DNA of 64,000 nt from Pavona decussata (taxonomy: Eukaryota), in contig CDRNST010000057.1 in NCBI GenBank assembly GCA_977016875.1, positions 2,232,001 through 2,296,000 on the forward strand. Direction: 5' to 3'. The notes under the pieces were generated by a model. The model made no database searches, was not told where the DNA came from, and saw nothing but the letters and a program-made list of their open reading frames with translations. A program made the position numbers and the translations under genes. Below are positions 15,014-37,021 of this stretch, piece by piece (positions within the stretch are counted from its first letter, which is position 1; each line of letters starts with the position of its first letter).

Positions 15014-18000
15014 CTATCTTTGTCCTTTTTCTGGTGTCTTGTAAACTGGCGCAGTTGATTTAGGAAGGGGAGGATTCCCTAAGATAATATCAGCTGCCTT
15101 TTCAGCGATCATAACAGTGGGTCCATTAAGATTCCCACTCACAATACTTGGCATGATTGATGCATCAACAATTCTCAGATTTTCCACTCCCATGACCTCT
15201 GTTTTATTATTGACGACAGCCATTGGATCATCTTCAGAACCCATCTTACATGTGCATGATGGATGGTAAGCAGTATCAGCATTCTGTCTAACCCAAGCAT
15301 CAATTTGTTCATCAGTTTGAACATCATCACCTTCAAAGAAAAGAATGGCAAAAAATGGGTCATTGTTGAATAACAACATTTTTACAATAACTGTCCAAAT
15401 TCCCGCGCGCTGATTGGCTCGTAGCTATTGTCTATAAGAGTACAGACAATAAAAATGACGTCAGATGTAACGCGCGCGCTTTCTCAACGAAAAAAATAGC
15501 CAATTCCGCTCGTGCTTTTTCCATGTTATTGTAAAAAACAAATCGACGGCAGTTTTCTATGGTCTATACTCTTATAGACCATAAAATGACGCCATAAAAT
15601 GTCCAAAACTTGGCAGTGAAACCACTTGCCTGCGGCTCGTGGTTCCACTTGTGTTTTGAACATTTTTTGACGTCATTTTATGGTCTATAAGAGTATAGAC
15701 CATAGAAAACTGCCGTCGATTTGTTAAGTATATCTGTAGTTCTCAAAAAATAATAATACAGTATTACAAGATGATAGATAGCCCAGCACTCCCCTGACAT
15801 GTACTGCTGCCATATTTGTGGGGTATGGTATAATGGCTCATATACCACGGCCGCTAAACCAATCAAACCTCTAGAACTGTGTTATCCAATGGGTCAGTTT
15901 TGAATAATTACATGACTCTTTTTTTTTCTGGCTTATAATAAATAAATGGGTCATCAGTCAATAGCAGACAATTTCTTTTTTCCAATACATAAATATTAAA
16001 ACAACTCATGAGTATAAACACTACAGTTGATTCCATCCTGTCGATTATTTAGTTTGCATGGATCATATTTCTATGTGATTCATGCATACATACACATAGA
16101 AATTTGTTTAAACACTCAATCAGGAAACAGGAAATCGTTATCAATGGTGCTCCATCCACTAAATACATGTAGATACACAAAAATAATATCAGAGAAGTCT
16201 TAAATGATTGTCAATCAATCTTATAAAGGTTAAATTGGGTAAAAGTAAAAAAAAAAGTAAATGCTTTGGTTATAGTGGAAATAAACTTAGCTACCCAATG
16301 CTAGTTTACAGGCATTCCACTCAGTGGAATACCTGTGGTGCTTTGCTGACGGTATTTAAAGACAGCCCCTCAGCATTTTATCAGCTTTTCTTAACAATTT
16401 GACAGCATTATACTGGCAGCCAGTCTTATGATCATGCTATTCTTATAAAAAGCATCACATGTAGATAACATGTACAGCTTCCTGGTCACATTCTCATGAA
16501 CCTTTCTCCCTCTCATGAATCCCTTAAAATCCTAACAGCATTATTTGTTACTAGATGACCCTGTTACACTATCCACCACAAGGGGAATTCTCACTTCTCA
16601 CCAACCGTTCTCCATCCCCCTTCCCCCCCTCCCCCTCCACCACTAACCTGGCTGCAGTTCTTTTCCGCGGAATGGATCAAAAGCCTTTTGACTGAATATT
16701 TCTCTTGTCAGGCGAACAGAATCCCTTAACTCCACTCGATCTTCTTCTGTGGATAAGTAGTTGGGGTTTATGATGGGATGATCATAGGGATTCACTGACT
16801 TTAGCTTTACGTATCCGCGACTTGTGGCCCGCATGGAACCAACATGTACCTTGAAAAGAAGATTGTCTTGAGTAAAAATAAAAATCATGAAGATTCAGAG
16901 ACAATATTAATTTAAACTGAGGTGGGAAAATATACAAAGTCATGTAAACTGCCTTATGAAAGACTTGCATTAGAAAGACCATCATTATTTTTTACAAAAT
17001 TAATTACCACACAATTGTCTAAATTACAGTTAAGTATCCTGTACCACATTCACTTAACAGACTCACACACTCATTGAGCTGTAAGCTGTAAACATATGGG
17101 AGAGAAAGAGGGACGATGTACCTTCTTGCAAATGTTTTCAAATTGATTCAATTTAGTTTGACATGAAATGATGCAAATGTACTTAACACCAAATCATACA
17201 ATTTGTAGAAAACAACATTACATAACCCAACCCTAAAGATGCTTTGCTCATACCTGAACCCCTGATGAGCAACTGTGGACAAGCTTGAGGAAATGTGCCA
17301 CTAAGACTTTGTAAGAAACTTTTCAGAAATACTTTCTAGACCCAACAACATTACAATGATGACCTACTTGAAAAGCTTCTTTCTCAACAGTAACTCTGCC
17401 ATGATCTTTAAAGGCTGAAGGAAGAAAGTGGTACTGGATGTTGGGATGAGAGATGCCCTCTCTGGTGCGAATGAAGCCTCCAGCCTCAAGATGTGCAGTG
17501 GCACATGGCCCGGTTCTTGTGAGGAACCACTTGACACCAATAGGAATCATGTTCCACCACTTGAGTGAACGATACAAACTTAATGGCTGGGTGCATTCCT
17601 GAAAAATGTCAAAACAGAGTTAAGCTCTGGCTACTAAATTATTTAAAGGCATTGTTGTCTTCCTTAACTTGGACCCACTCAGGTTTTAAAACCCTGTGGG
17701 GGCAAATACCATGAAAGTTACATACATACAGGTACATGTTGTCACAGTGGAAGTGCCTTGAAGATCAGAACAGACACCTTCATAGCAGGGTGTCCACAAG
17801 GAAAATGTTTACTATACTACAGGGAGATGCTCTGCTATTGAACCATTAAACCATTTACTAGGTTCAAATGACATCTGTCTCACATACTGCTACGATCTGG
17901 ATTCATTTCAATTCCAATAATTTATATTCTTTCTTTCATTTCAAATCTTTGCCTTTCGAAATCCCTTTCTCCCTTGACATTTCTAATAATTGGGGGGACC

Positions 18001-20949
18001 ACATAATAAATACAATCAACATATAATTTACCACTAAATGTAGGACCTCAAAGAAACAGAAACAAGCAAACAGATCAAGACCACAACCATCACAACCCAC
18101 AAAAAAATGTGACTTTAAACTCTCCTGAACTAATCTTCCTTGTCTACTATAAGAAATGGCGAAAGTGAAAATGTTCGTTGATATTTCAACTACAAATTCG
18201 TACAGTTTGTATACAGCTGAGAGAAAACAAAATGCACTCAGACCTGGTGAAAGTACATCTCCAAATGATCCTGTAAGTTCTGCCCTACACCTGGAAGATG
18301 AACCTTCACAGGGATTCCAAGCTTCTTCAAATCATCTGCATTTCCAATGCCAGACAAGTTCAGTAATTGTGGTGTGTTAATAGCTCCAGATGTTAAAATA
18401 ACTCCCTTTCTTGCCCTTACACGTTTAAATTGATTTTGGCAGGTGTACTCGACACCTATAGCTTTATTATTTTCAAATACTATTCTGAAAATCATTGCTT
18501 TTGTGTCTGCTCGAAGGTTACGTCGCTTGAGCGCAGGTCTAAGGTAGGCATTGGCTGTATTCCATCGTATGCCTTTGTGGATCGTCATGTCCATCCAACC
18601 TAACCCCTCTTGTTGATAGCCATTCATGTCTTCTGTGAAAGGATAACCAGCCTGGACACCGGCATCAATAAATGCTTGATACAGAGGGTTGTCTGATTTG
18701 CCCCGTGACACATGAAGGGGGCCATCGCCTCCTCTGTAATCATCTGGACCTAGTGGGATAATGACAGTAGTAATCTTAATATAAATTAAACAGAAGAAAG
18801 GTCCTCACAGTCGTTTGTACAACTTATTAAAGCAGTTGTGAAAAGAAACCTAAAAAAATTCAGGCTTGAACGGGATTCAAACCCATGACATCTGTGATGC
18901 CAACCGGGAGCTGGTCATAATTATTATGAGTTCTCAGAATATGAGCAGCTCCCAGTTGGCTTGATAGCTCAGTTGGTAGAGCACTGTACTGGCATCGCAG
19001 AGTTTTGTTTTGACGTTGTCACTCCCAGGGGTCCTTAGACCAGTATACCCATCATACAATGATGTACACCAGTGAAAAGAGAGACAACATGAAGCAAAGT
19101 TTGTGGGGCTATTTCGTTCAAAATTCTTACCCAACTCGTGCGTCTGCGATTTCCTGAAGTAAGGCAAACAATCAGCATATGACCAGCCTTTAGCTCCTTC
19201 CTTTTCCCAGCGATCATAATCATAAGCATGTCCTCTGATGTACACCATGGCATTCAAAGATGACGACCCTCCCCAAACTCTCCCTCTAGGCTGATAGATA
19301 CGCCTACAAAAGAATTTGCTAGCCATTTATATTTTGTCTGTCAGTGAGTTAAAAGCAGATTACTAACAGTCTTTTTTTTTCATGTACTCTCAAAGAACAT
19401 GTGCTACCTGGAAACGCATTTCTTGATTACTTTTTTTACAAAACTATCATTGAAACATATTAATTCTTCGTGGCACCTGCAGGAGCAACCATCAAAAGTC
19501 CATGCTCTTCACACATTGAAATCCAAGATGAGGCAACAAAAAGGTGGCACTAGAGCCTATATGTCCTGATGCAAACATGAAATCAAGGGAGTTTGAGAGA
19601 CTGTTATTATCACTTCATGTGAATCCAGAAAAAACATTAAGCATGCAATCTCTTTTGTTTTTAAAGTTTACCTATTGTCCATAAACTCTTGTGGCTCTGT
19701 TTCATAATACCAGTTGTATTTGTTATCACAAAGGTTATAAATAAGAGCTGCAGGCATATGGATTTTCCACGTCCAATCTTTAGGTCCAGCCTCCAGCAGA
19801 ATAACTTTGTTGTCAGGGTTTTCCGACAGACGATTTGCTAGAACACAACCTGCTGAGCCTGCTCCACAGATCACATAGTCATGGGTTGAAGAGAACTTCA
19901 TTGTGGATAGGAGGCATTTTTGGTGGAAATTAGGTTGATGACCTGAAGGGAAAAAAGGAACAGCTCATTACAGGGGATTAATGCATGACTTGATTGAGGA
20001 TCACTGAATATGGAGTCTTCGGATGTATTCGGAAATCTTCGGATAATTTTATAGTCGTGTCCTTTTTGGAAAATCCTGGCACTCCCAGGTTTAATATCTC
20101 ATGCCTTTGAGTCAGAAAACGTTGGCGGTATACTATCAACAAAAAGTAAATTCCTTGTTCAATTCAAAGACATTTGTCCAGAGAACACTCCCATGAATCT
20201 TGAGAGGGTATTTCTGTTCATGACAACAAAAATTAACTTAAATGTCATAAATAATAAAATTAATTTTTAACTATTGAAATAAACTAAGCAAATACAGCCA
20301 TTGTTAATGATTCTAACAGCCCATATTTAAAACAGGATTCAGCATTTGGGGTAAAAATGACAGAAATAAGTGTCCTCAAAATCAATGCCCCACTTAAGTC
20401 ACAGAAATTCTCAAACCCACCAATAATTCATGAAGAGAAAACAAAGGAAATCACTACCATGAAGGAGGTTTGGAAATGTGATCTTAATTATCATAAAATT
20501 TGGTAAACTTTTGATTTGAATTTCTCCAATGATTAAAAATGGTTTAAGAAGGCATATCAAACACTACAAAGAGCGTTTCATCTTTTTTCAAAACACCTTT
20601 TAAAAGAACTTGCATATCATTTTCCAATCCACTTCTTGGTGTTTGGAAATAAAATAAAATAAAAACTCTTCATTGTGTTTGGTATATTAAACTCCAAGTA
20701 ATAATTATTTACCATTTTTTAAATTTGTGTTAATTTCATGGAACAAATTAATTTCCTTTTAATAAAAAGCTGTTAATATAAAATTTGAAAAAGTTGAGAA
20801 ACATGTCAACAGACATGCAATGAATCAATATTGTTCCATGAAACAGCAAGTAAAGAGAAAATTCATATCATGTACTTGCCATTTATTATACGGAGTGCTG
20901 GAGGCAGACTTTTAAAGGAGCATCTTTTTATAAGCATCAAGGAAGCCAT
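15014..20949 (-). CDS. CHDH: Choline dehydrogenase, mitochondrial (GMC oxidoreductase), paralogue A, 589 aa; coding exons 20949-20880, 19942-19672, 19303-19131, 18749-18244, 17598-17368, 16849-16648, 15330-15014
   Basis: FAD-binding [35 protein letters not shown], catalytic YHPSCT and GNLN, as in BetA/CHDH. Exon phases are consistent (1770 nt). Basic Ser/Leu-rich N-terminus [20 protein letters not shown]. The first coding intron needs a GC donor. Confidence 0.95.
15537..15725. repeat. Long hairpin (foldback) repeat in the last intron of CHDH-A
   Basis: AACAAATCGACGGCAGTTTTCTATGGTCTATACTCTTATAGACCATAAAATGACG and its reverse complement ending at 15725. Confidence 0.8.
18800..19002. mobile_element. 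tRNA-derived SINE fragments in opposite orientations (CHDH-A intron)
   Basis: A-box-like TAGCTCAGTTGGTAGAGC (~18965) and reverse B-box GGGATTCAAACCC (~18872). Same family as 39990-40138. Confidence 0.7.
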
Positions 20950-24582: not shown

Positions 24583-27500
24583 ATGTACGGTTATGTCAAA
24601 AGGTTTGCTACTTGTGCCGCACAACTGTCTAGGAAGACACTCTCATGGAAAGCAAAAGGTAAATTTTTAAAAATGACATTCGGGCTTTGTTCCCTTTAGC
24701 CTTCCTCGCGGACGCTCTTTTGGCGCGCGACGAGCCCAAAAGAGCGCAGTACGAGAGAGGCAGCTACCGATCAGTTTGAAACTTCAACATTAATACTACC
24801 TACCCCCGGACACTAGTGCTTTTGGCTTGTAAAAATCGCCACCCCAGGTTGAAGTTTTAAATTGATTGTCACGTAAAACATTTGGAATCCATTTTTCACG
24901 CATGCTATTAAACCTATAGAGCCACGTTATGGTCCATAAAAGGCATGGTTTTAATTTTGAGCCATTTTCATCAGAAATACCCGAGTTTGTAGGGTTCAAA
25001 GAGCTGTCAGGGGCCGTCCAGACTTCCCAAAAGAGGGGATTGTCAGTCAGCATGAACTTTCATTTGTGGGGTCAGGGGTCCAAAACACACCGGAAATTGG
25101 TGAAAAGAAGGTTTGTAAAGGGGGAAATCTGGTAATTGTAACTCCTGATAGTAATTAGGGTTGCCCCCTACCTTCTCCCACCCTGTGCAATTCCCAGGGG
25201 GAGATACTCGGGTATTTTTTTTTTTTTTTTTTTTTTTTAACAGCTTTATTGACCATCACACATGTTAAATACAATAAATTAAACAACTAGAAAGAAATGA
25301 AAAATACGTGAAAAGTGATAAGGTCAAAAGGGCAGGTGCGAACGGGACGCGAGGACCCATGCGAGGCACCTCCTTACGTGACTGGGGGTCCGACGTATTT
25401 TTTGGGTCTAAAATTTTCAACTCCTGTATTTTTTGGGTTTGAATTTTGCCAGGCTTATAGTTCTTACACAATTCAAGCCAAAGTTCCCGCAAGATCCAAA
25501 AGCATGATTCAAATAATCTGCATGTAGTTCCAGTCTTGCATTTTTTAGGGCTCCGTCACCCCCTTCCCCCCCCCCCCCCGTCACATTTATACCCGAGTAC
25601 CCCCTGGGGTGCAATTTTGGTCTGGAAAGGGTAAGTGATTTTGAAGGAAACCTTTCCACTCTTGAAATAAAGTAACGTCAAATTGTTGAAAATACAAATA
25701 TTAAGGAAACCCCGGTGAATTCACCGATTTTTCTTTTCGTCCTTAACCCTACTTGGGAGCCTAAATTTTTGGTTTCAAATTTCCTGAGGGGCGCTATGTT
25801 GGATATTTTTCATGGCGTAATATATTGCTCAATTCTTTCAGCAACCATATGACATACAAAAAGTATAAATCCAAAATGGCAGTGTGCAGGGGTTTTTTGT
25901 AATAATTTGAAAACTTGCAACAATCATATCTAAGTTTTAGCACACTTGAATGTTATTTCTACTTTTCAAATGAAAATTTAAAATTTCAACGATATTTCCA
26001 ATTATTTAATGTCAATTTGTGGCTAGACTTCTAATATCCCTCACACACACAATAGCAGCCACAAAATAAGAAAAACTTACTAATATTACTTTTTTGGATT
26101 CAATCTCAACTAGCATTGAGAAAAAAATGCTTCAACTCAGTACGGTCAGCTTCATCATTTTCTTCAACCCATGATTACATCATTGTGGGAGCAGGATCAG
26201 CCGGATGTGTTCTGGCAAACCGCCTGTCAGCCAATCCAAATTCAAGAGTGCTTCTTCTTGAGGCTGGACCAAATGACAACACTTGGAAAATCCACATGCC
26301 AGCAGCTATGTCATACAACTTAGAAAATGACAACTACAACTGGTTCTATACAACAGAACCTCAGGAAAACTTGAAAAACAGGTTAAACTGGCTTTTTTTT
26401 CGTGCATTTCTAGTTATTTAGCATCCCCAAAACTGATGCACATCTCTGATTAAATTAAACAACTGCAAAGAATGTGCCTTACCATTCTCTTATGTGACAA
26501 CTATTTTTCACAACCTCTTAATATAAGTCAACCTTATTTGCAGGGTCTTTCTTTGTAATGCTGGGAACAAGTGAAGAGAGACAGGAAATGAGAGCTAGGG
26601 GAGAGTTGGGGCGGGGGGTGGGGGATGGAGGGCAAAGGGTAAAACAGCAAAATAATATCTTACAATTATTATAAAATTTTACATGACAAGAAGAAAGTGG
26701 TGTGTTAGCCAGCAAGAAATTCTGAGCTTGGAGGCATAGAAGGTTGGACACTCATATGCATTGTGCATCAATGTATCAAATGAGAGGGTCCCCAGCTTAT
26801 TTTCAAGACAAAGACACGAAGGGCTGAAAAGTTTTTAAATTCTACCTGAATATTTTCACATTGAATCTGTGGGCTCAACAATCACCATACACCCTGTCAG
26901 CTAGATAAAAAAGAAACAGTGCCAGACCTGCAAAGTCCTAAATTATCCTTGCTGCCTTCCAATACAGCCTGCCGTGACCATTTAACATTCCAGTGTCTGA
27001 TTTAGACTTGTGAAAAAAGAACATTACCATCTAAATGAAAAGGAAGGGCAGAGCTAGAGGGATAAGGTCTTAAATTAAGAATATATATTTGTGAATGTGT
27101 TTTGGTTTGAGCCTCCTCTCCTCTTTATACTTGTGTTTCAAACTCAGGTTACCCTTCCTCCCTTCGCAATTTCCAGTGCTTTTTCTTGGGCTGGGTAAAT
27201 TTTCTAAAAAGCATGCAATATTATGTTTTTGATCCACTTTTAAGATAAAGGTGGGGGGAGGGGGAGCAGAGTACCCTGGGTCTATGCCTGGACTCCCTTC
27301 CCTCCCCGCCAACCTAAGTTAAGACCTTAAACGTTTTGATCTACAAAGTTATTAAGGTTAGAAAATCCTCATGGGATAAATTATTTAAATGATATAGCCT
27401 GTGAAAAGGCTCCCAAGTGGAGTATAAAGCAAAGAGAAAAATCTAGCTTGGTCCAGACCATGCTCATCTCGTTTCACTCGCCAGTTTTTCTCTTCCCGTA

Positions 27501-30500
27501 TGCCCCACTGTTGGAGCCTGTTCACAGGCTAAAATAATATTGCCTCCATTTCAGAACTATGTACCACCCGAGAGGTCGAGTGCTAGGTGGTTCCTCATCC
27601 ATAAATGCAATGATCTATGTTCGAGGACACGCCTTGGACTATGACAGATGGGAAAAAGAAGGAGCTTCTGGATGGTCATATGCAGACTGTCTGCCATACT
27701 TTAAGAAATCTGAGACTTTTGAACTTGGTAAGTTTGTTTTGCAATGCATTTTGTCTGCCTTGGTAAATCTACACTGGTGTCAAGAAATGAGAATCATTTG
27801 AACTTGGAATCTCTTTGGTGAAAATGCTGACTTCCTGTCCCTTAGCAATCAGGCACGTGAACTTGGTATGCCTGTGGCCTTATGAAAACTATCAGTACCT
27901 TTCTTCACATAATCTGGGTAACCCTGTTGTCTTGCCTCAATCTGGTGTTTCTGTGGTCTTATGCAAACTGCCGGAAATTAATGTTATACAAACTACTTAT
28001 GTCTGTAGACCAACTATACTGTAAAGCGTGGCTTACTGGGTGAAACCAAAAACCAATAAGATTGGTCATAGTGTTTTTGCAACAGCCATATTGGAGGAGC
28101 GAAACAATAGAATGATTTTTTCTTTGGGAAATATAGTTATTTTTATGCAAATATTTTTTTTGTTTTGTATCTCTAACATGGCCATCGTAAAAATACTCTA
28201 TCGTGTGGTCTTATGAAAAAACGAAGAAGCCTGGTAAATGAACGTGTGATCCTCAGCAAGCAGCCCACTGGCTTATGGTTGGTTATAGCCACTGTAAAGA
28301 GATGCAAAGGCTGACTTTTCACGCGCCAGTCCCTTTTCTATCTCTTTCAGGGTTGGCTAATTTAGCTTATCAACTTTGTTGAACAAACCAACCATTCCTT
28401 TTTTCCCCCACCGACGCGGTACCACAGTTTGTTTATAAATACAACCCTGGCACCCAACAACTTAGTTATACCAAATTCATTAGTTTTCTGACGAGGGATT
28501 CGTGCAGAATGTCCAGCTTGTTTAATCTGGGGTCAAAGGCAAAATTAAGGACCTTACAATTAGTAGGTCTGGCGGTTGGCCCAGAAGAAAAGGATCTGAT
28601 TATGCGTAGTTTTAGCTAAGTGGAGTGCCACGTAAAATAAAGTTCCAAGTTCCAAGTGTCCGTTGGGTTTTGTCAGTACGTTTATCATCCCAATATCTGC
28701 GCGGTCCGAAAGCGAAAAACGCACCAAATGCCAACGGAAAGGCTTGTTACGCAGGCTCTCAGCCTCGCTCGTTTAACCAATCCGATGGCAGAATTCAGTT
28801 TGTATGGAATGCGCGCCGACTGATGTTGAACACCAAATGGGCGCGTGGAGAAATGCCGGTCTGTGGTACCCAGAACACATCGACTGTTGTCGCTGTTGTC
28901 TCGTTTCCTCCAGCTTTAACAATCGCACTTGCAGTGACTCCAGTGCAGTGACTCTTTCAAAATATCAACACTTGCTTCTCTCCTCAGGTGCCAGCCAATA
29001 TAGAGGCGGAAATGGCCCACTGCACGTGTCACGTAGTTCGTCTTCGCACCCTCTGCATCAGGCCTTTTTGGCCGCTGGGGTTGAAGCTGGTTATCCCTTC
29101 ACTGAAGACATGAACGGTTATCAACAGGAAGGAGTTGGCCGGCTGGACTGCACAATACATAACGGGAAAAGATGCAGTGCGGCCAGGGCTTATCTCAAAC
29201 CTGCATTTCAACGAGAAAGCTTAACCATTGAAACAAGGGCATTGGTAAACAGAGTGCTGTTTGAAAACAAGAAAGCGGTCGGCGTAGAGTATCGCATTGG
29301 AAACGCAACAAAATGCGTGAGAGCGTCTAAAGAAGTCATTATTTGCGGTGGTGTGATAAATTCTCCTCAACTGCTGATGTTGTCTGGAGTTGGAGATGCC
29401 CATGAGCTGAACAGATTGGATATACCTACAGTGGCTAACTTACCCGGAGTAGGAAAAAATCTACAAGATCATTTGCAAGTCTACATTAAATATGTAAGTA
29501 TTTTTAGTAAAGAGGCGAATAATTCACATAAAAGATGCCCCTGTCGAAATGAGCTAAGCCATGAGAAAATAAGGCGGGCGGAGAGGAAAGATAGCGCGTT
29601 GATTGGCATATGTGAATTTCACTCGAGTATATTTAGATGCTGTTTAAGACGAAAGACTATTCCCCGTGACGTGATGGCGAGGCATGGTAGGGTTGACAAT
29701 TGTCGTTCAAAGTAACTGAGTCAAATTTGACTCCTCAGCGCCCTGTGAAACCTACCAGCGGAAGCACTTGCCACGCAAACTACAGTTTGAATTTCCACTC
29801 TGATCAAGGGACTGATCACCGGATCACCCACTGATGCGTGCGGACCTTTCGTTTACAAAACTTCTAAAAGTGTAGTCAGTAGAGAAATTCACATAGTAAT
29901 AGTAAAGGCTTTATTTATAGAGGGTAACACTTGGCAGTAGTAAAATCACTGAGAAATGCGTGGCCCCCATATCCCAAGCGAGGTCTAGAATGGCGCGGGG
30001 CGACACCGTCTCCGCTGTCTCCGTCCCCGTCCCCGTCCCCGTCCCCGTCCCCTGTATTTTCTCAGGGTTCATACGGGTCATTAAAAACATGGCAAATCGT
30101 AGAATTTTATCATTTCATGGAATTTAAGTTTGAGTCATGGAAACTCATGGAAAATAATGTTACGATACAGAAAGAAAGAAAGCATTCTTTTAGGTGATGA
30201 AAAAGCACGAAGATTAAGAATAAAAAAAGAAGAGGTTTCAAGAAACAGATTTATACTCAGTAGAAATAAACAGTTCAGTTCGCATTTTGACACTGTAGAA
30301 TACGAACGCTTTGTCAAGGAAAACTTTGAAAAGGTCATAAAAAGCCATGGAATGTTAAAAGCCAACTGAAGAGTACGAACCATGTTTCCCTTGGCTAAGC
30401 TCATCACCCCATTTTTTTCCTTGTTTCTACCACAGCAATGTCTCCAACCAGTGACACTCAACAGTACATTTAAACTACACAACCAGATCATGGCAGGAAT

Positions 30501-32851
30501 GAAATGGTTTCTGTTTAAGGGAGGAGTTTGTGCGTCTAACCACCTTGAGACTGGTGGATTGATCAAAAGTGACTCAAAGATCTCGCACCCGGACATACAG
30601 ATGCAGTTCTTACCCTTGTTTATCAGTGAAGCAGGAACAACACCGGCAACCCAACACGGATATCAGGTACGCGTGCGTGACTGGCAGTGCTGATCACAAC
30701 ATTGAAAGACTATTGAACTAAAGTCGTGAAGACACGAAGGGTATGGGGAGGGGGGGGGGGGGGTTGGGGAGGGGGAGTTAATTCGTGGTGGGACTGCTGC
30801 TTGCAGAATTTCTTGGGACCATTTTTCAATTAAGACTCGCTTCCATCTCTCAAACTGATATTGGGCATTCACTTAAATTTCAAACTTAAGAGGAAAAGAG
30901 GGAAAAGTAGAATAGTGTAAGCCTCGAACCTGACTCGTTATGTCTGCTTCATTCCTTCTATCGTACGTTAACCACTACACCAACGAGGACTAGCTGACGC
31001 GATTGTAATTTTTAATATATTTATGTAGAGTTACCCATCACAATAAACGAAAGCAAACCGCTTTCGAATCAGTGCTTAACCCTAAATACTGCAAAGATCG
31101 GTGCTAAGCCCCAAAATGATGTTCCTTGTCTAGCTGGAGCTCTATTCACTCAGTTCTCTGCCTAATAAATGGGCTTGTTCTTGTGTCATCAGGTCACGAC
31201 CGTCACATTCGTGAACGGTTACCAAGCGTGGTCGAAAAGTGGTCCCAAAATATATTTTTGCCTGATGCTTGTTTCGATGTTCCGCCAATTTACAGCAGTT
31301 TTCAATAAGTGTCGTAGAAAAAAAACCAAAGTAATTACTCTGACCAATCACAGCAGACGTAAGCAACACAAAGAACCAATCAGAACTCGAAGTAAATGTG
31401 TGTACAGTAACCGGCGCCAAACGCGGAAAAATGCGCGCGAGAAAGTCACGTTTTGTTTTGGTTTTGCTTCTCTTTGGCTGAGAAGCTTTGCAAGGAGAAT
31501 TGGTAGCAAACGCGAATAGCGCACTGAAGTAATCTCAAATGGATTAAGGAGTTAGTTTCTGGGATGCTGCTGTCGGTGGGGAGTAGAAATCTCCTTCACT
31601 CTAACGCAGGGCTAACGCTTGGAACGTCAGCACTCGGATCTCTTTACGGCAGTCAATTTACCTTTAGTTATTAACTCTGTTGATAAACCAAACATTTGTA
31701 GTAATCTCACCCCGCTTATTTTTCTCCCTCCCCTATCTCTGATGTGTCCGTAGTTGGCAACGATTGTGACAAATTCTGCTTTATTCTCTGACCATTTCAG
31801 CTCTGTGTTGAGATCCTGAGACCGACCAGCCGAGGTTTCATCAAGCTGAAGTCACGTGACCCACTCACGCATCCCGTCATTCAACCAAACTATTTGTCAA
31901 CCGAGAGCGATCGCCGGCTGATGAGGGCCTGTGTCCGAGTGGCGCGTCACGTGCTCAGCCAGAAGGCCTTGGAACCTTACAGAGGAAAAGAGTTGAAGCC
32001 AGGTTTGTAGTCAGCCGTTTGTAAGCGTACAAAAACGGACGGTGAAAACAGAAGTTTTTGAATTTATTTCCTTGTCAGGACTAAACGGGGCGCAACTCAC
32101 AACTGTGAAGCAAGTCAACCGACACAAGTTGGTTTCAGTATTGTTTAATTTATTATCGGCTGGACACTTAAGGCTGCGTGTTGATTTGGCAACTTGAATA
32201 ATCCAGCATTACCCTCTGAACAGGGGTTTAACGCCCGGGGTTACCTACAATCCATGTACTGACTTCCGAGGCAGCTCAAAACTCGGTGTAGGTCACGGTT
32301 TTCAATTCCAATTTGATCTGGCTAGTGTCCTCAATTAGTGCTCTGCGCTAAATTCATTGACACTTAAAATAAAGTGATTTAATTTTATTTTTTATTTGTC
32401 TAAATGTCGTTTAAGTAATTGGCGTTAATCTTTTTCTGCGTAAAACTAGCTGATCAGAGAGAAGGCGCAAGGGTTCTGCTGACTACTTTGTTGTATATAG
32501 TAACGGATGTTTTGTAACGGAAATGTTTATTGACGTCGTTTTCGTTTAGGTGATAACATTAAAACAGAAGAAGAAATAGACGCTTTTGTCCGAGGTTACG
32601 CCAAGACAGATTACCATCCCTGTGGTACGTGCAAGATGGGAGCCGAGGATGACCCGACGGCTGTTGTCGACAGCGATACGCGAGTCTTCGGTGTGGACAA
32701 TCTTCGGGTTGTGGATGCGTCTGTCATGCCTAGTATTGTCAGCGGTAACCTTAATGCGACCACTATCATGATTGCGGAGAAGGCAGCGGATTGCATTTTA
32801 GGTGAGGCGTGTCTGCCAAAGGAACACGTGCCAGTGTACGGTCTTTCCTAG
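24583..32851 (+). CDS. CHDH: Choline dehydrogenase-like GMC oxidoreductase, paralogue B, 585 aa; coding exons 24583-24658, 26114-26381, 27555-27727, 28988-29493, 30436-30666, 31801-32002, 32550-32851
   Basis: Same motifs ([32 protein letters not shown]). Internal exon lengths 173/506/231/202 are identical to paralogue A. Frame open over 1758 nt. N-terminus [30 protein letters not shown] is presequence-like. Confidence 0.93.
25193..25608. mobile_element. CCC..GGG-ended MITE in CHDH-B intron 1, interrupted by a poly(T) retroposon tail
   Basis: CCCAGGGGGAGATACTCGGGTAT ... ATACCCGAGTACCCCCTGGG. T-run at 25215-25238. Confidence 0.55.
30006..30052. repeat. (CCGTCC)n microsatellite
   Basis: Tandem hexamer; source of the SPSPSP in ORF 29931. 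Confidence 0.9.
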
Positions 32852-34004
32852 CTTGTGAACACTTTCGGCAGTCTGGACTTCAAAAGTTTATAACAAACAT
32901 CGTAAGTCTTCTCAAAATCAGAGTTGCCAAACGCCGATGTTACACTTTTTTTGTGACCTCTCAGTGACTTATAACTGCCCACTCGCCAATAGCTTACTTT
33001 TAGTCGACATTTTGTGAATTGGTGCGGAGCAAGCCAGTCCACTTACCTTACGTCCTTAAAGCTGCTGAGTTCAAAAACCAAAAGAACTTGATATTTTCCC
33101 TTGAACGAGGCTAGTAGGGCTAATTTGTATGCAGACAAAAGAATATGAAAATATCAGCTATTTTGTATAAGGTCTACGACGTGGGAATACAAGAAACAAC
33201 ATTTTTACTCAGAGTCTGCCGGGATGCAAGCCTTCTTGTTACCGTCGGCAGTAGACAATGTTTAGATATGATTGTTGGCAAAATTGAAAACGGCTTTATA
33301 GAACGTGGTTTTGTTAAACACCGTCTAAACTGTCTTTTAATAACTGACCCATTGTTTTTGCTCATTAAACCTATTGTCCTGTGGCGTTGTCGTTGTCGTT
33401 GCCGTCGTCGTTGCTTAAGCTCCCTAATAATACATGAAGAACGAGCCGGCATTGCTGTATTTGATTTCGTTGTTCACATATCAGGATATGCTCCCAAAGG
33501 ACTCTTCTTACAAACGCTGCAAGAACAAAATTGTGTTTTATTACCGGAAACTGAATAAACCTGTTAAATTAACTTCCAAAGAACTAATTCAAAATTATAT
33601 AATAAAGAGCACGGCGTTATGCATACCACCATACAGACTTATGGAGTGTATGCACGTGTCGTCATCGCCACCATGTTGGTGTACCGTCAACAAAAGAGGT
33701 CTCATTAGCTGGGTTTGTTATGTATTTAGTTTAGTTTAAACATACCTACCCGCCTCGACTAGCTTCAGCTATTTGCGGGTAGGTATATAAACACCTTGTA
33801 ACTGTGTATTTTTTAATAAAGTGTTAAGTGTTGTTAAAGTGTAAACCAACATGGTCACCACGCCATTGTCATTGGAAGCCCTTGGGATTGGTTGTATGCC
33901 GCTCTATTTGTCCCACCCGGGTTGTGAACTGCACATCTTTGGTGTCGCACAACAGCGTCCATCGAGGAAGGCTGTCCCGTCACAAGTCATTGAAGAAACA
34001 AAAA

Positions 34005-36181
34005 GACCTACGATACAGCCTTAAGCGATCACCTGTTGATATATGGTTTGATGAAGGAGACAGTTAAGCGCTATCAGAATAAAATTATAACTTCCAGGAA
34101 CTATAAGAATTGTGATAGGGAAGTGTATGCAAATAAGCTAGCCGCAGCTCCATGGAACGTCGGAGATCTGTTTGATGACGTAGACGACCAAGTATATTCT
34201 TGGAAAACACTGATGAAGGATATAGTGGATGAATGCTTTCCCCTGAAAAAGATGCGAGTGAGATCCGTGGATGTCCCTTACATGACAACATCGTGGAAAA
34301 GTGCTATGAGGGCAAAAAGAAGAGCCACTTCAAATTATTACAAAGATAAATCTGCACACAACTGGGAGGTTAAACAAAGGTGTCGCAATGAAGCAACGAG
34401 ACAACGAAGGATTGCAATTAAACAATACTGGAAAAAGAAAGCTGAAGATCTAAAGAGAAATTCAAAAGAATTTTTCAAAACCTTTAAACCGTTTTTGGGA
34501 TCGAAGACTTGCACTAACAAACAAGCAGAAATTAACCTCAAAGTTAACGGTACTGTGGTAAGTGATCAAGCAAGAGTTGCCGAGACTCTAGCACGTCACT
34601 TTGCCACCCTTGCTGACAGTATTGGCGGAGACAGAGCTCAGCAATCAGAGAAACAACTCTGCAACCATCCAAGTCTAGCGCGGATTAGATCTCACTGTGA
34701 AAATAAACAAGCAATAACTATTGAGTCTACCAACGCAACAGAAGTACTGTGTGCACTTGAATCGCTTAAAACAAATAAGGCAACGGGACACGATGATATC
34801 CCGGCTTAAGTACTGAATCTGGGAGCAAAGGAACTAGCCATACCCCTCACTAAGCTATACAACTCTTGCATCTCCAGTGGAAAGTGGCTAAGTGAATGGA
34901 AAAGGGGAGAGTGGATACCCGCCTTCAAGAAAGACGATCCACTCGACAAAGAGAACTACGGACCGGTTACAGTCCTTTCTGCTGTGGACAAAGTCTTTGA
35001 GCAGCTGATTAGCAAACAAATCACTGCTCAATTCGAAAGCCGCCTATCAGATTCCATTACCGCCTACCGCAAATCTCATGGCTGTGAGACAACCCTTGTC
35101 TCACTGGTGGAGCAATGGAAACTTGCAAGGGACGGAGCTACTATCTACGGATATGTCAAAGGCATTTGACTCACTTCACCCACCACTCATGCTTAACAAA
35201 TTAAGAGCCTATGGTTTTGCGGAAAACACCGTAAATCTTCTACGCTCTTATCTCTCCAACCGACAAAACAGAATTAGACTGGGATCACTAGCAAGTTCTT
35301 GGCAAGTGGTAAACAGAGGATGCCCACAAGGATCTGCGTTAGGACCACTTCTTTGGAACATCTTCCAGAACGACCTGGCCTATGAAATTAATTTGAACCT
35401 TTCTATGTATGCAGATGACCATCAGATTTACGAAGCAAGAGAGGATCTCGCAAACGTAAAGTCATCACTTAGCAGGAATGCAGAAAAAGCATCTAATTGG
35501 TATGAAGACAACATGCTAAAGGGTAACTATAGTAAATATAGAACCATGACAATGCAGAACAAAAGAGAGATAACAACTCCGACCATGAGTATTCAAGGCA
35601 GCGAAATCGAGTCGACAGAGAAGTTGAATCTTTTAGGAGTGACGATAGATAGTAAACTGAACTTTAACCATCATATTAACAACGTGTGTAAAAAAGCAAG
35701 CCAAAGGATTGGGGTCCTTATGAGACTGAAAAACCTGATACCAACAGAAGCCAAGCTGCAGCTATATACTGAAAGCTGCTATCTTACCATACCTTACTTA
35801 TTGCCACCTCACCTGGCACTTCTGCAAGGCAAGCGATAGGAGAAAGCTTGAACGCATACAAGAAAGAGGACTCAGGGCAGTTTTTAAGGACAAACATTCT
35901 AGCTACGAGAAACTACTGGCAAAAGCAGACATACCATCGTTATACAACAGACAATTGCAGTTATTGCAGGACATTGCCATCTTCATCTATAAGATTAAGC
36001 ATGAATTACTGCCACAGAGACTTTGTAATCTTTTCCAATTAGACAGTGGTTCGTATTACTTAAGGAAGCGAGAATTTGTTCAACCTCGATTCTCTTCGGT
36101 GAAATATGGAAAACACTCACTTCGTTACCTAGGGCCTAAACTGTGGAATGATCTCACTCCTAGAATAAGATATCAACCCTC

Positions 36182-36248
<67 letters not shown>

Positions 36249-37021
36249 TTCACCACGACATACAAACATAGAAAGTTACAATGAATAATAGACTAGGATT
36301 ACAAGTACATAAGTTTAGAGTAAATAATAATAGTAAAAGAAGTAAGAAGTGGCGAGGAGACCTCAAGAAACCCCCGGGCTTATACTGAGAGGTCTCCTCG
36401 GAGATATGTTGGGACTTTAAGACCAGTAAAGACATTGTATTGAGATTTTTTAACATACGGTGGTGGTAAGACTATAAAGACATAACAGACTCGGACGTTT
36501 CATGCAATTAACTGAGGAAATCAAGAAGCTTTCTTTTGAAGGTGGATAGACTAGGGGAAGACGTAACTGATAATGGCAAAGCATTCCATATTTTTGGCCC
36601 TCTATAGAGTATAGTAAATTGCTTGATATTAGTTCGGCAGGTGTGAGGTCGAAAATGAGCTGAGGTTCTAGTATCATAATTATGAATTTGACCACCAGTC
36701 GGAAATAAATTTAGAAAGGGCGAAGGCAGCAAACGTTGGTGATAGCAATATAAAAGAGTCATACGTAATCAGGACCTTACTGCCCTAGCAGCAAATGTCA
36801 GTAACTGTCGAGGCTGCAACCTATGCCGAGAATGACTAGGGTTTACATGATTTTTTGCGATTGATGTATGAAAGTTTATTAATATGGTTTACGATGTAAA
36901 CGTTAATTCATTTTTTAGAATTTTCTAGAATTTAGTTAGGTGTCCACTATTAGTAGAGGGGACTTCTCCCCTCAGCTACATTTCTTGACACGTTAATAAA
37001 GTTATTATTATTATTATTATG

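Follow-up and report, generated by a model that had tools for sequence, protein, structure and literature searches.

The choline-oxidising flavoenzymes of the GMC family, namely choline dehydrogenase (CHDH/BetA, EC 1.1.99.1) and the choline oxidase CodA of Arthrobacter globiformis (structures 2JBV and 4MJW), are the closest described relatives of the gene reported here. In choline oxidase, glycine betaine (4MJW) is contacted by W61, S101, I103, W331, H351, V464, Y465, H466 and N510, E312 stabilises the positive charge of choline, and H351 serves in both substrate binding and transition-state stabilisation (PMC10980864). In HMFO (4UDP), a GMC oxidase of aromatic and furanic alcohols, Val367 points into the active-site cavity and Trp369 is among the conserved active-site residues (PMC7414962); Val367 controls the charge preference for the substrate, and the V367R replacement improves the positioning of acidic substrates (PMC7414962, PMC5831843). 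Here, we describe a 64,000-nt stretch of the coral Pavona decussata (assembly GCA_977016875.1, contig CDRNST010000057.1, positions 2,232,001-2,296,000, forward strand; hereafter the window), in which two seven-exon GMC/choline-dehydrogenase genes lie head to head. Gene A, on the minus strand, has the canonical signature at every diagnostic site, whereas gene B, on the plus strand, has lost the residues by which choline is recognised. We favour, at a probability of roughly 55%, the reading that B is a functional CHDH paralogue of the hexacoral lineage whose pocket changed after duplication, and which would act on a non-choline, probably cationic, small alcohol.

B-type genes were compared as a set of seven, made up of window B and its counterparts on contigs of six other assemblies (loci L001-L006, drawn from the matches to exon 4 described below), on which exons were located by tblastn, with 23 sampled CHDH/BetA sequences. 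To fix the residue register, single exons were aligned with HMMER to solved structures. Exon 7 lies on choline oxidase at an ungapped offset, with the Asp-Tyr-His of B at 464-465-466 and its Asn at 510; the same exon aligned to HMFO gives His467 and Asn511 for the two catalytic residues, and this agreement validates the register. In exon 4, the last aligned residue, Tyr165, corresponds to choline oxidase 314, which puts the glutamine of QDHLQ at 312. For exon 5, NIQYHFLP of BetA (9lq0) aligns to DIQMQFLP in B, and a second local alignment covers the choline oxidase stretch RPDLMMHYGS, the histidine of which is 351; from these two alignments, B has no equivalent of His351. Three of the changes in B (312, 351 and 464) therefore fall on recognised active-site positions, as listed in PMC10980864.

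Position 312 is Gln in all seven B-type genes, whereas each of the 23 CHDH/BetA, which span bacteria to vertebrates, has Glu or Asp there, so the difference between A and B here is not a matter of chance. The His351 equivalent is likewise Gln in 7/7 B-type genes and His in 23/23 CHDH/BetA, and at 464 the B-type has Asp where the canonical set has mostly Ala (19/23) and in no case Asp. The first-pass annotation, made from the letters alone, had noted the Gln and the Asp, had named Glu312 as the site that binds the charge of choline, and had contrasted a short stretch that reads YQ/LCVEIL in B and FQ/VHVGSM in A (the slash marking the exon 5/6 junction, which it spans in both genes). On re-reading the window, every one of these motifs and codons is where it had been placed (Table 1), and the role given to Glu312 agrees both with the literature on E312 (PMC10980864) and with the acidic residue throughout the sampled CHDH/BetA. 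Conservation of the Gln, Asp and Glu in B orthologues, which it had named as a check, is also borne out: Asp464 and the Glu of the strand are as fixed as Gln312. What it had overlooked is the replacement of the His351 equivalent by Gln, and those of His by Cys, Gly by Glu and Glu by His.

These further changes emerge from a formal screen for columns that are invariant in the B-type, at least 90% conserved in the 23 CHDH/BetA, and non-overlapping in residues between the two groups; it singled out Gln for His351, Cys for His, Glu for Gly, His for Glu, Cys for Ser and Gly for Cys. Expressed as motifs, the B-type has fixed Cys-x-Glu for His-x-Gly on the strand before RPTSRG, ARH for TRE (the Glu of TREI becoming His), and Asp-Tyr-His-Pro-Cys-Gly for Ala-Tyr-His-Pro-Ser-Cys. 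The Cys, Glu, His and Cys-Gly are present in all B-type genes that cover these sites, and the FAD (flavin adenine dinucleotide) motif GxGxxG and the catalytic His and Asn are invariant in all of them; in B itself the motif reads GAGSAG and the His and Asn align to the solved structures, in keeping with the first-pass view that the catalytic apparatus is intact. Among 339 full-length homologues, window B and P0510, a B-type protein described below, are alone in having the combined signature QQCEHD, which is absent from the other 337. In P0510 its residues are Gln329, Gln391, Cys413, Glu415, His461 and Asp499.

Do these substitutions line the pocket, as the first-pass annotation had supposed? 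For the two Gln and the Asp, the mapping onto active-site positions of choline oxidase speaks for it. The Cys and Glu are placed by extrapolation: exon 6 aligns without gaps to HMFO (query 6-60 on chain residues 371-425), and the same offset, carried on for four residues, would put them at HMFO 367 and 369, on a strand that probably faces the pocket. In the structural model of P0510, the two lie on strand 409-416 and, being two residues apart, face the same side of it, and Gln391 is on strand 388-393. We also considered whether a Trp-Trp to Leu-His change (KWWN in A, KLHN in B) removes the Trp331 cage, and discarded the idea: PHN, PWN or PFH stands at this place in canonical CHDH/BetA, and the region has an indel relative to choline oxidase.

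The remodelled signature is not peculiar to this one genome. A word search with exon 4 recovered ten exon-level open reading frames (ORFs), 61-95% identical, every one of which reads QDH[LVM]Q where A-type ORFs and all other CHDH read QDHLE. The B-type genes of L001-L006 share 59-97% protein identity with B, with the signature fixed, and pairwise ratios of non-synonymous to synonymous divergence (dN/dS) among the B orthologues range from 0.09 to 0.21 over dS values of 0.06 to about 2, hence these genes are under strong purifying selection. In one of them (L005:1951-13475), exon 7 of the main B copy seems to be frameshifted, and a further piece of B-type exon 7, bearing a stop codon, lies upstream.

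Genes A and B have all six introns at identical positions and phases, and their proteins agree at 61% of 558 aligned residues, which marks the genes as duplicates and not as independent acquisitions. In a maximum-likelihood tree, the B-type forms a clade (support 100/99) inside animal CHDH, with the coral A-type as its weakly supported sister (63/72) and a stem branch no longer than that of the A-type (0.23 versus 0.25). The clade is about as deep as the splits that separate bilaterian phyla in this tree, from which the duplication would appear to be old. Horizontal transfer, which might be read from an identity of 64% to alphaproteobacterial-type BetA as against 61% to A, is rejected by the shared introns and by the tree. 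For animal CHDH of either type, identity to alphaproteobacterial-type BetA is 58-64%, and two bacterial lineages, one of them Legionella, sit inside an unresolved animal polytomy. A search of representative sequences with B gave no match above 64% identity, and the B-type clusters with canonical CHDH at 50%. Profile searches for annotated full-length B-type proteins, from which exons 5 and 6 were excluded, returned none; the profiles were dominated by bacterial BetA and mollusc scaffolds of a CHDH fusion discussed below, and MAFFT misplaced short exon fragments. Our literature search found no paper on a cnidarian CHDH paralogue.

Gene B is transcribed and spliced. In RNA contigs from two runs of the same organism, introns 3, 4, 5 and 6 are missing exactly as modelled, with GT..AG ends; the contigs differ from the window at 28 sites, 18 synonymous and 10 non-synonymous, with the signature codons untouched. 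A cluster look-up further yielded P0510, a 580-aa full-length B-type ORF on a 2,286-nt contig assembled from an RNA run of another species; it codes without introns, which identifies the contig as mRNA, and its sequence crosses all exon junctions as in our model of gene B. The gene's structure, expression, conservation, selection and residue changes are established.

As a natural orthologue, P0510 stood in for window B in structure prediction with AlphaFold2 (116-row alignment). The model has a mean pLDDT (predicted local distance difference test) of 93.7 and a pTM (predicted template modelling score) of 0.92, with only residues 1-28 disordered, and Foldseek gives target-normalised TM scores of 0.93 to BetA (9lq0), 0.92 to choline oxidase (2jbv, 4mjw), and 0.87-0.94 across the listed BetA, choline oxidase, bacterial, aryl-alcohol and HMF oxidases. 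The B-type is predicted with confidence to have the two-domain GMC fold, and both PF00732 and PF05199 are on record for orthologous B-type ORFs and for full-length P0510. The 45-residue N-terminal extension of B contains 10 Lys/Arg and no Asp or Glu; this basic, acid-free composition, together with disorder in the model, may point to import into mitochondria.

The models of A and B were built from open frames, splice sites and the alignment of A to B, in DNA of about 40% G+C that is eukaryotic in character (Table 1). The frame of B is intact throughout and its splice sites are canonical; exon 1 is the sole ATG-to-donor candidate with the right phase, and its peptide and donor are conserved in L001 (100%), L002 and L004. 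Gene A is 86% identical to the Pocillopora damicornis protein P0486, and at the N-terminus the Pocillopora A-type protein matches the peptide encoded by exon 1; the first intron of A apparently has a GC donor (G/GCAAGT) in place of GT, at 20878-20879 on the minus strand. Gene order varies: the head-to-head arrangement of the window is also that of L001, and at L004:309-12907 an A-type and a B-type gene stand in tandem on one strand.

Table 1. Positions of genes A and B, their exons, motifs and RNA-supported junctions, in window coordinates.
Feature	Position	Strand	Details
Gene A, canonical choline dehydrogenase	15014..20949	-	589 aa, seven exons
Gene A exons	20949-20880, 19942-19672, 19303-19131, 18749-18244, 17598-17368, 16849-16648, 15330-15014	-	
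Gene A motif QDHLEMY	18273-18253	-	GAG 18261-18259
Gene A motif TAYHP	15274-15260	-	
Gene B, whole	24583-32851	+	585 aa, seven exons
Gene B exon 1	24583..24658	+	Start codon and basic N-terminal extension; phase 1 end, GT donor at 24659
Gene B exon 2	26114..26381	+	FAD-binding GxGxxG motif GAGSAG 26188-26205; NCBIfam choline-dehydrogenase model positions 4-77
Gene B exon 3	27555..27727	+	GMC signature GGSSSINAM; exon 3-4 junction in spliced contig, run X6
Gene B exon 4	28988..29493	+	Gln CAA 29476-29478 at choline oxidase Glu312 position, near exon end
Gene B motif QDHLQVY	29464-29484	+	
Gene B exon 5	30436..30666	+	Gln CAG 30604-30606 in place of His351 equivalent
Gene B exon 6	31801..32002	+	Cys 31804-31806 and Glu 31810-31812 for invariant His and Gly; His 31948-31950 for invariant Glu
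Gene B exon 7 and stop codon	32550..32851	+	Asp GAT 32609-32611; catalytic His 32615-32617; catalytic Asn 32747-32749
Gene B motif TDYHP	32606-32620	+	
Junctions in RNA contigs	27726/28987 and 29493/30436; 32002/32550 (run X5)	+	

Several other elements surround or interrupt gene B. Just downstream, at 33994-36281 on the plus strand, long open frames have reverse-transcriptase character, and an RVT_1 gene is called at the corresponding place in L001 (16821-17507). Intron 4 holds a (GTCCCC)n microsatellite at 30019-30050, and scans of the B locus with Rfam and for tRNAs gave no match. RNA runs labelled as coral metagenomes match short parts of the window, mostly with contigs of intronic repeats. 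Short pieces inside the introns of B (28043-28223, 31301-31843 and 32206-32386) are matched by hundreds of RNA contigs, many of which stop at 31654-31699, with a summed RNA depth above 10,000 in coral metatranscriptomes; these pieces are probably dispersed repeats transcribed elsewhere.

How, then, does the B-type compare with enzymes already described? With CHDH/BetA it shares fold, domain order, length, FAD motif, Tyr-His and Asn (identity 55-64% with bacterial BetA, 61% with gene A), but in B the motifs QDHLE, IQ[YF]HFLP, [AV]HVG, TREI and HPSC have lost, respectively, their acidic residue, their His, their His and Gly, their Glu and their Ser-Cys, and each of these is conserved in 22-23 of the 23 sampled CHDH/BetA. 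Relative to CodA (~32% identity), B keeps the GMC fold and the equivalents of Tyr465, His466 and Asn510, but has Gln for Glu312, Gln for His351 and Asp for Val464. HMFO and other GMC alcohol oxidases have the same fold, and HMFO offers Val367 and Trp369 as counterparts of the Cys and Glu of B by ungapped offset; identity is ~30%, this equivalence is extrapolated, and the substrates of HMFO bear no relation. The NCBIfam cut-offs are 732.1 for TIGR01810 (the betA equivalog) and 605 for NF002550, and P0510 exceeds both (749.4 and 810.1); rough sums of exon scores for the window genes are about 642/715 for B and 692/767 for A, and bacterial GMC proteins with other pockets score 535-608 on TIGR01810. 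NCBIfam has no specific name for those bacterial GMC proteins in which single B-like residues occur. The B-type is thus a choline dehydrogenase by profile score, but not a canonical member by its defining residues.

The scallop (Argopecten irradians) protein P0450, 'choline dehydrogenase, mitochondrial-like', has Asn at 312, Asp at 464 and a Gln where HVG has its His, and like P0510 it lies above the betA equivalog cut-off; unlike B, it retains His351, the Gly, Glu468 and HPSC. The tree was made from a sequence set that did not contain P0450; that its changes differ from those of B suggests a second, probably independent, remodelling of the pocket in a marine invertebrate, and not a B-type orthologue. 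In molluscs, hemichordates and amphioxus, 800-900-aa proteins also named 'choline dehydrogenase, mitochondrial-like' (P0004, P0387-P0392, P0425, P0426, P0428 and P0429) have an N-terminal HAD-type hydrolase domain (PF13419, PF00702, PF13242) fused to CHDH, and may be phosphatase-dehydrogenase fusions.

In the reading that we favour, gene B would have arisen by duplication of the neighbouring canonical gene A, after which its substrate pocket changed. The enzyme would keep the apparatus for FAD binding and hydride abstraction (GxGxxG, the GMC signature, Tyr-His and Asn) and would move hydride from the carbon of the alcohol to FAD, the conserved His acting as the base. It would have given up the residues that hold choline (the acid at 312 and His351) along with three further family-invariant residues, and gained two carboxylates, an Asp at 464 beside the catalytic His and a Glu on the probable pocket strand, as well as one His. 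We posit that the alcohol is held in a more polar pocket by the carboxylates at 464 and on the strand, and not by 312 and His351; given the net gain of acidic side chains there, the substrate is probably still cationic. A carboxylate beside the flavin, at the non-polar oxygen site occupied by Val464, would disfavour reaction with O2, so the Asp at 464 would fit a dehydrogenase rather than an oxidase. The first-pass annotation had gone as far as to call B an active mitochondrial alcohol dehydrogenase with a remodelled pocket. An intact, spliced and transcribed gene under purifying selection, with its choline-recognition residues replaced in the same way in its hexacoral orthologues, is what we find; pocket geometry, activity, substrate class and a probable mitochondrial location are what we infer from sequence and model.

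Several points weigh against this reading. Choline could simply be held by the new Asp or Glu in the place of Glu312, and P0510, at 749 against a betA cut-off of 732, is overall very CHDH-like. The hydrophobic-moment (amphipathic-helix) test for a presequence was not significant, RNA depth across the spliced gene is low (3-7), and the placement of the Cys and Glu on the strand is an ungapped offset extended 2-4 residues past the HMMER alignment to HMFO. The first two of these would be expected if B were still a choline (or betaine aldehyde) dehydrogenase, its anionic anchor moved from 312 to the new Asp or Glu, with A and B as isozymes distinguished by kinetics, regulation, tissue or electron acceptor. 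We consider this possible but doubtful. The nesting of B in CHDH, its score over the betA threshold, the retention of Tyr465, His466 and Asn510, and the balance of one carboxylate lost for two gained are all consistent with it. However, seven positions at which enzymes proven or presumed to act on choline vary little or not at all, from bacteria to vertebrates, have changed together and have since been frozen. Quaye and colleagues reportedly found in 2008 that the E312Q replacement weakens choline binding by choline oxidase at least 500-fold, which also counts against continued use of choline. The equivalent of His351 is gone as well, a residue of both substrate binding and the transition state (PMC10980864).

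Perhaps, instead, the cationic substrate itself was abandoned, in favour of a neutral alcohol or polyol, or of other flavin chemistry such as the oxidation of a 2-hydroxy acid with decarboxylation. With its Gln, Gln, Cys, Glu, His and Asp the pocket has become more polar and offers more hydrogen bonds, the C-terminal motif has gone back from the CHDH-specific HPSC to the HPCG general among GMC enzymes, and enzymes of this fold use very diverse substrates. We nonetheless regard such a shift as improbable, as the net gain of negative charge speaks against anionic substrates and the signature is found in no related characterised enzyme. It is more improbable still, to the point where we give it hardly any weight, that B is a duplicate without catalytic activity or in decay, retained, if for anything, for some function other than catalysis. 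The loss of key substrate-binding residues and the frameshift and stop-bearing fragment at L005 could be taken in that sense, but the frame in the window is intact with canonical splice sites, dN/dS stays at 0.09-0.21 over dS to about 2, the catalytic His and Asn and the FAD motifs are invariant, the gene is transcribed and spliced, and the P0510 model is confident.

If B is a neofunctionalised flavin alcohol dehydrogenase, as we favour, what might its substrate be? Corals contain glycine betaine, other betaines and dimethylsulfoniopropionate (DMSP) in large amounts, and several enzymes of these pathways are still to be identified. The oxygen-dependent step from dimethylsulfonio-2-hydroxybutyrate (DMSHB) to DMSP was without a characterised enzyme in corals in 2017 (PMC5557254), and knowledge of the eukaryotic enzyme was still lacking in 2024 (PMC11306096). 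A precursor of a sulfonium compound or of another betaine, as raised in the first-pass annotation, is a matter of speculation. That the B-type performs the oxidising step for a sulfonium or other non-choline onium alcohol or hydroxy acid in a coral osmolyte pathway, such as DMSHB towards DMSP or the route to another betaine, we consider very unlikely.

Whatever its substrate, the B-type is a conserved, expressed and lineage-restricted flavoenzyme, and the roughly seven residues that set it apart could be swapped between adjacent paralogues to study how specificity evolves in the GMC family. It also bears on how genomes are read. Genomic surveys count choline-oxidising genes by homology, as in the coral betaine survey that counted betA and codA homologues by similarity alone (PMC7240134). 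Because it exceeds the curated betA equivalog threshold, the B-type would be counted among the choline dehydrogenases in spite of its lost choline-recognition residues, a warning that the copy numbers of CHDH in cnidarians may overstate their capacity to oxidise choline.

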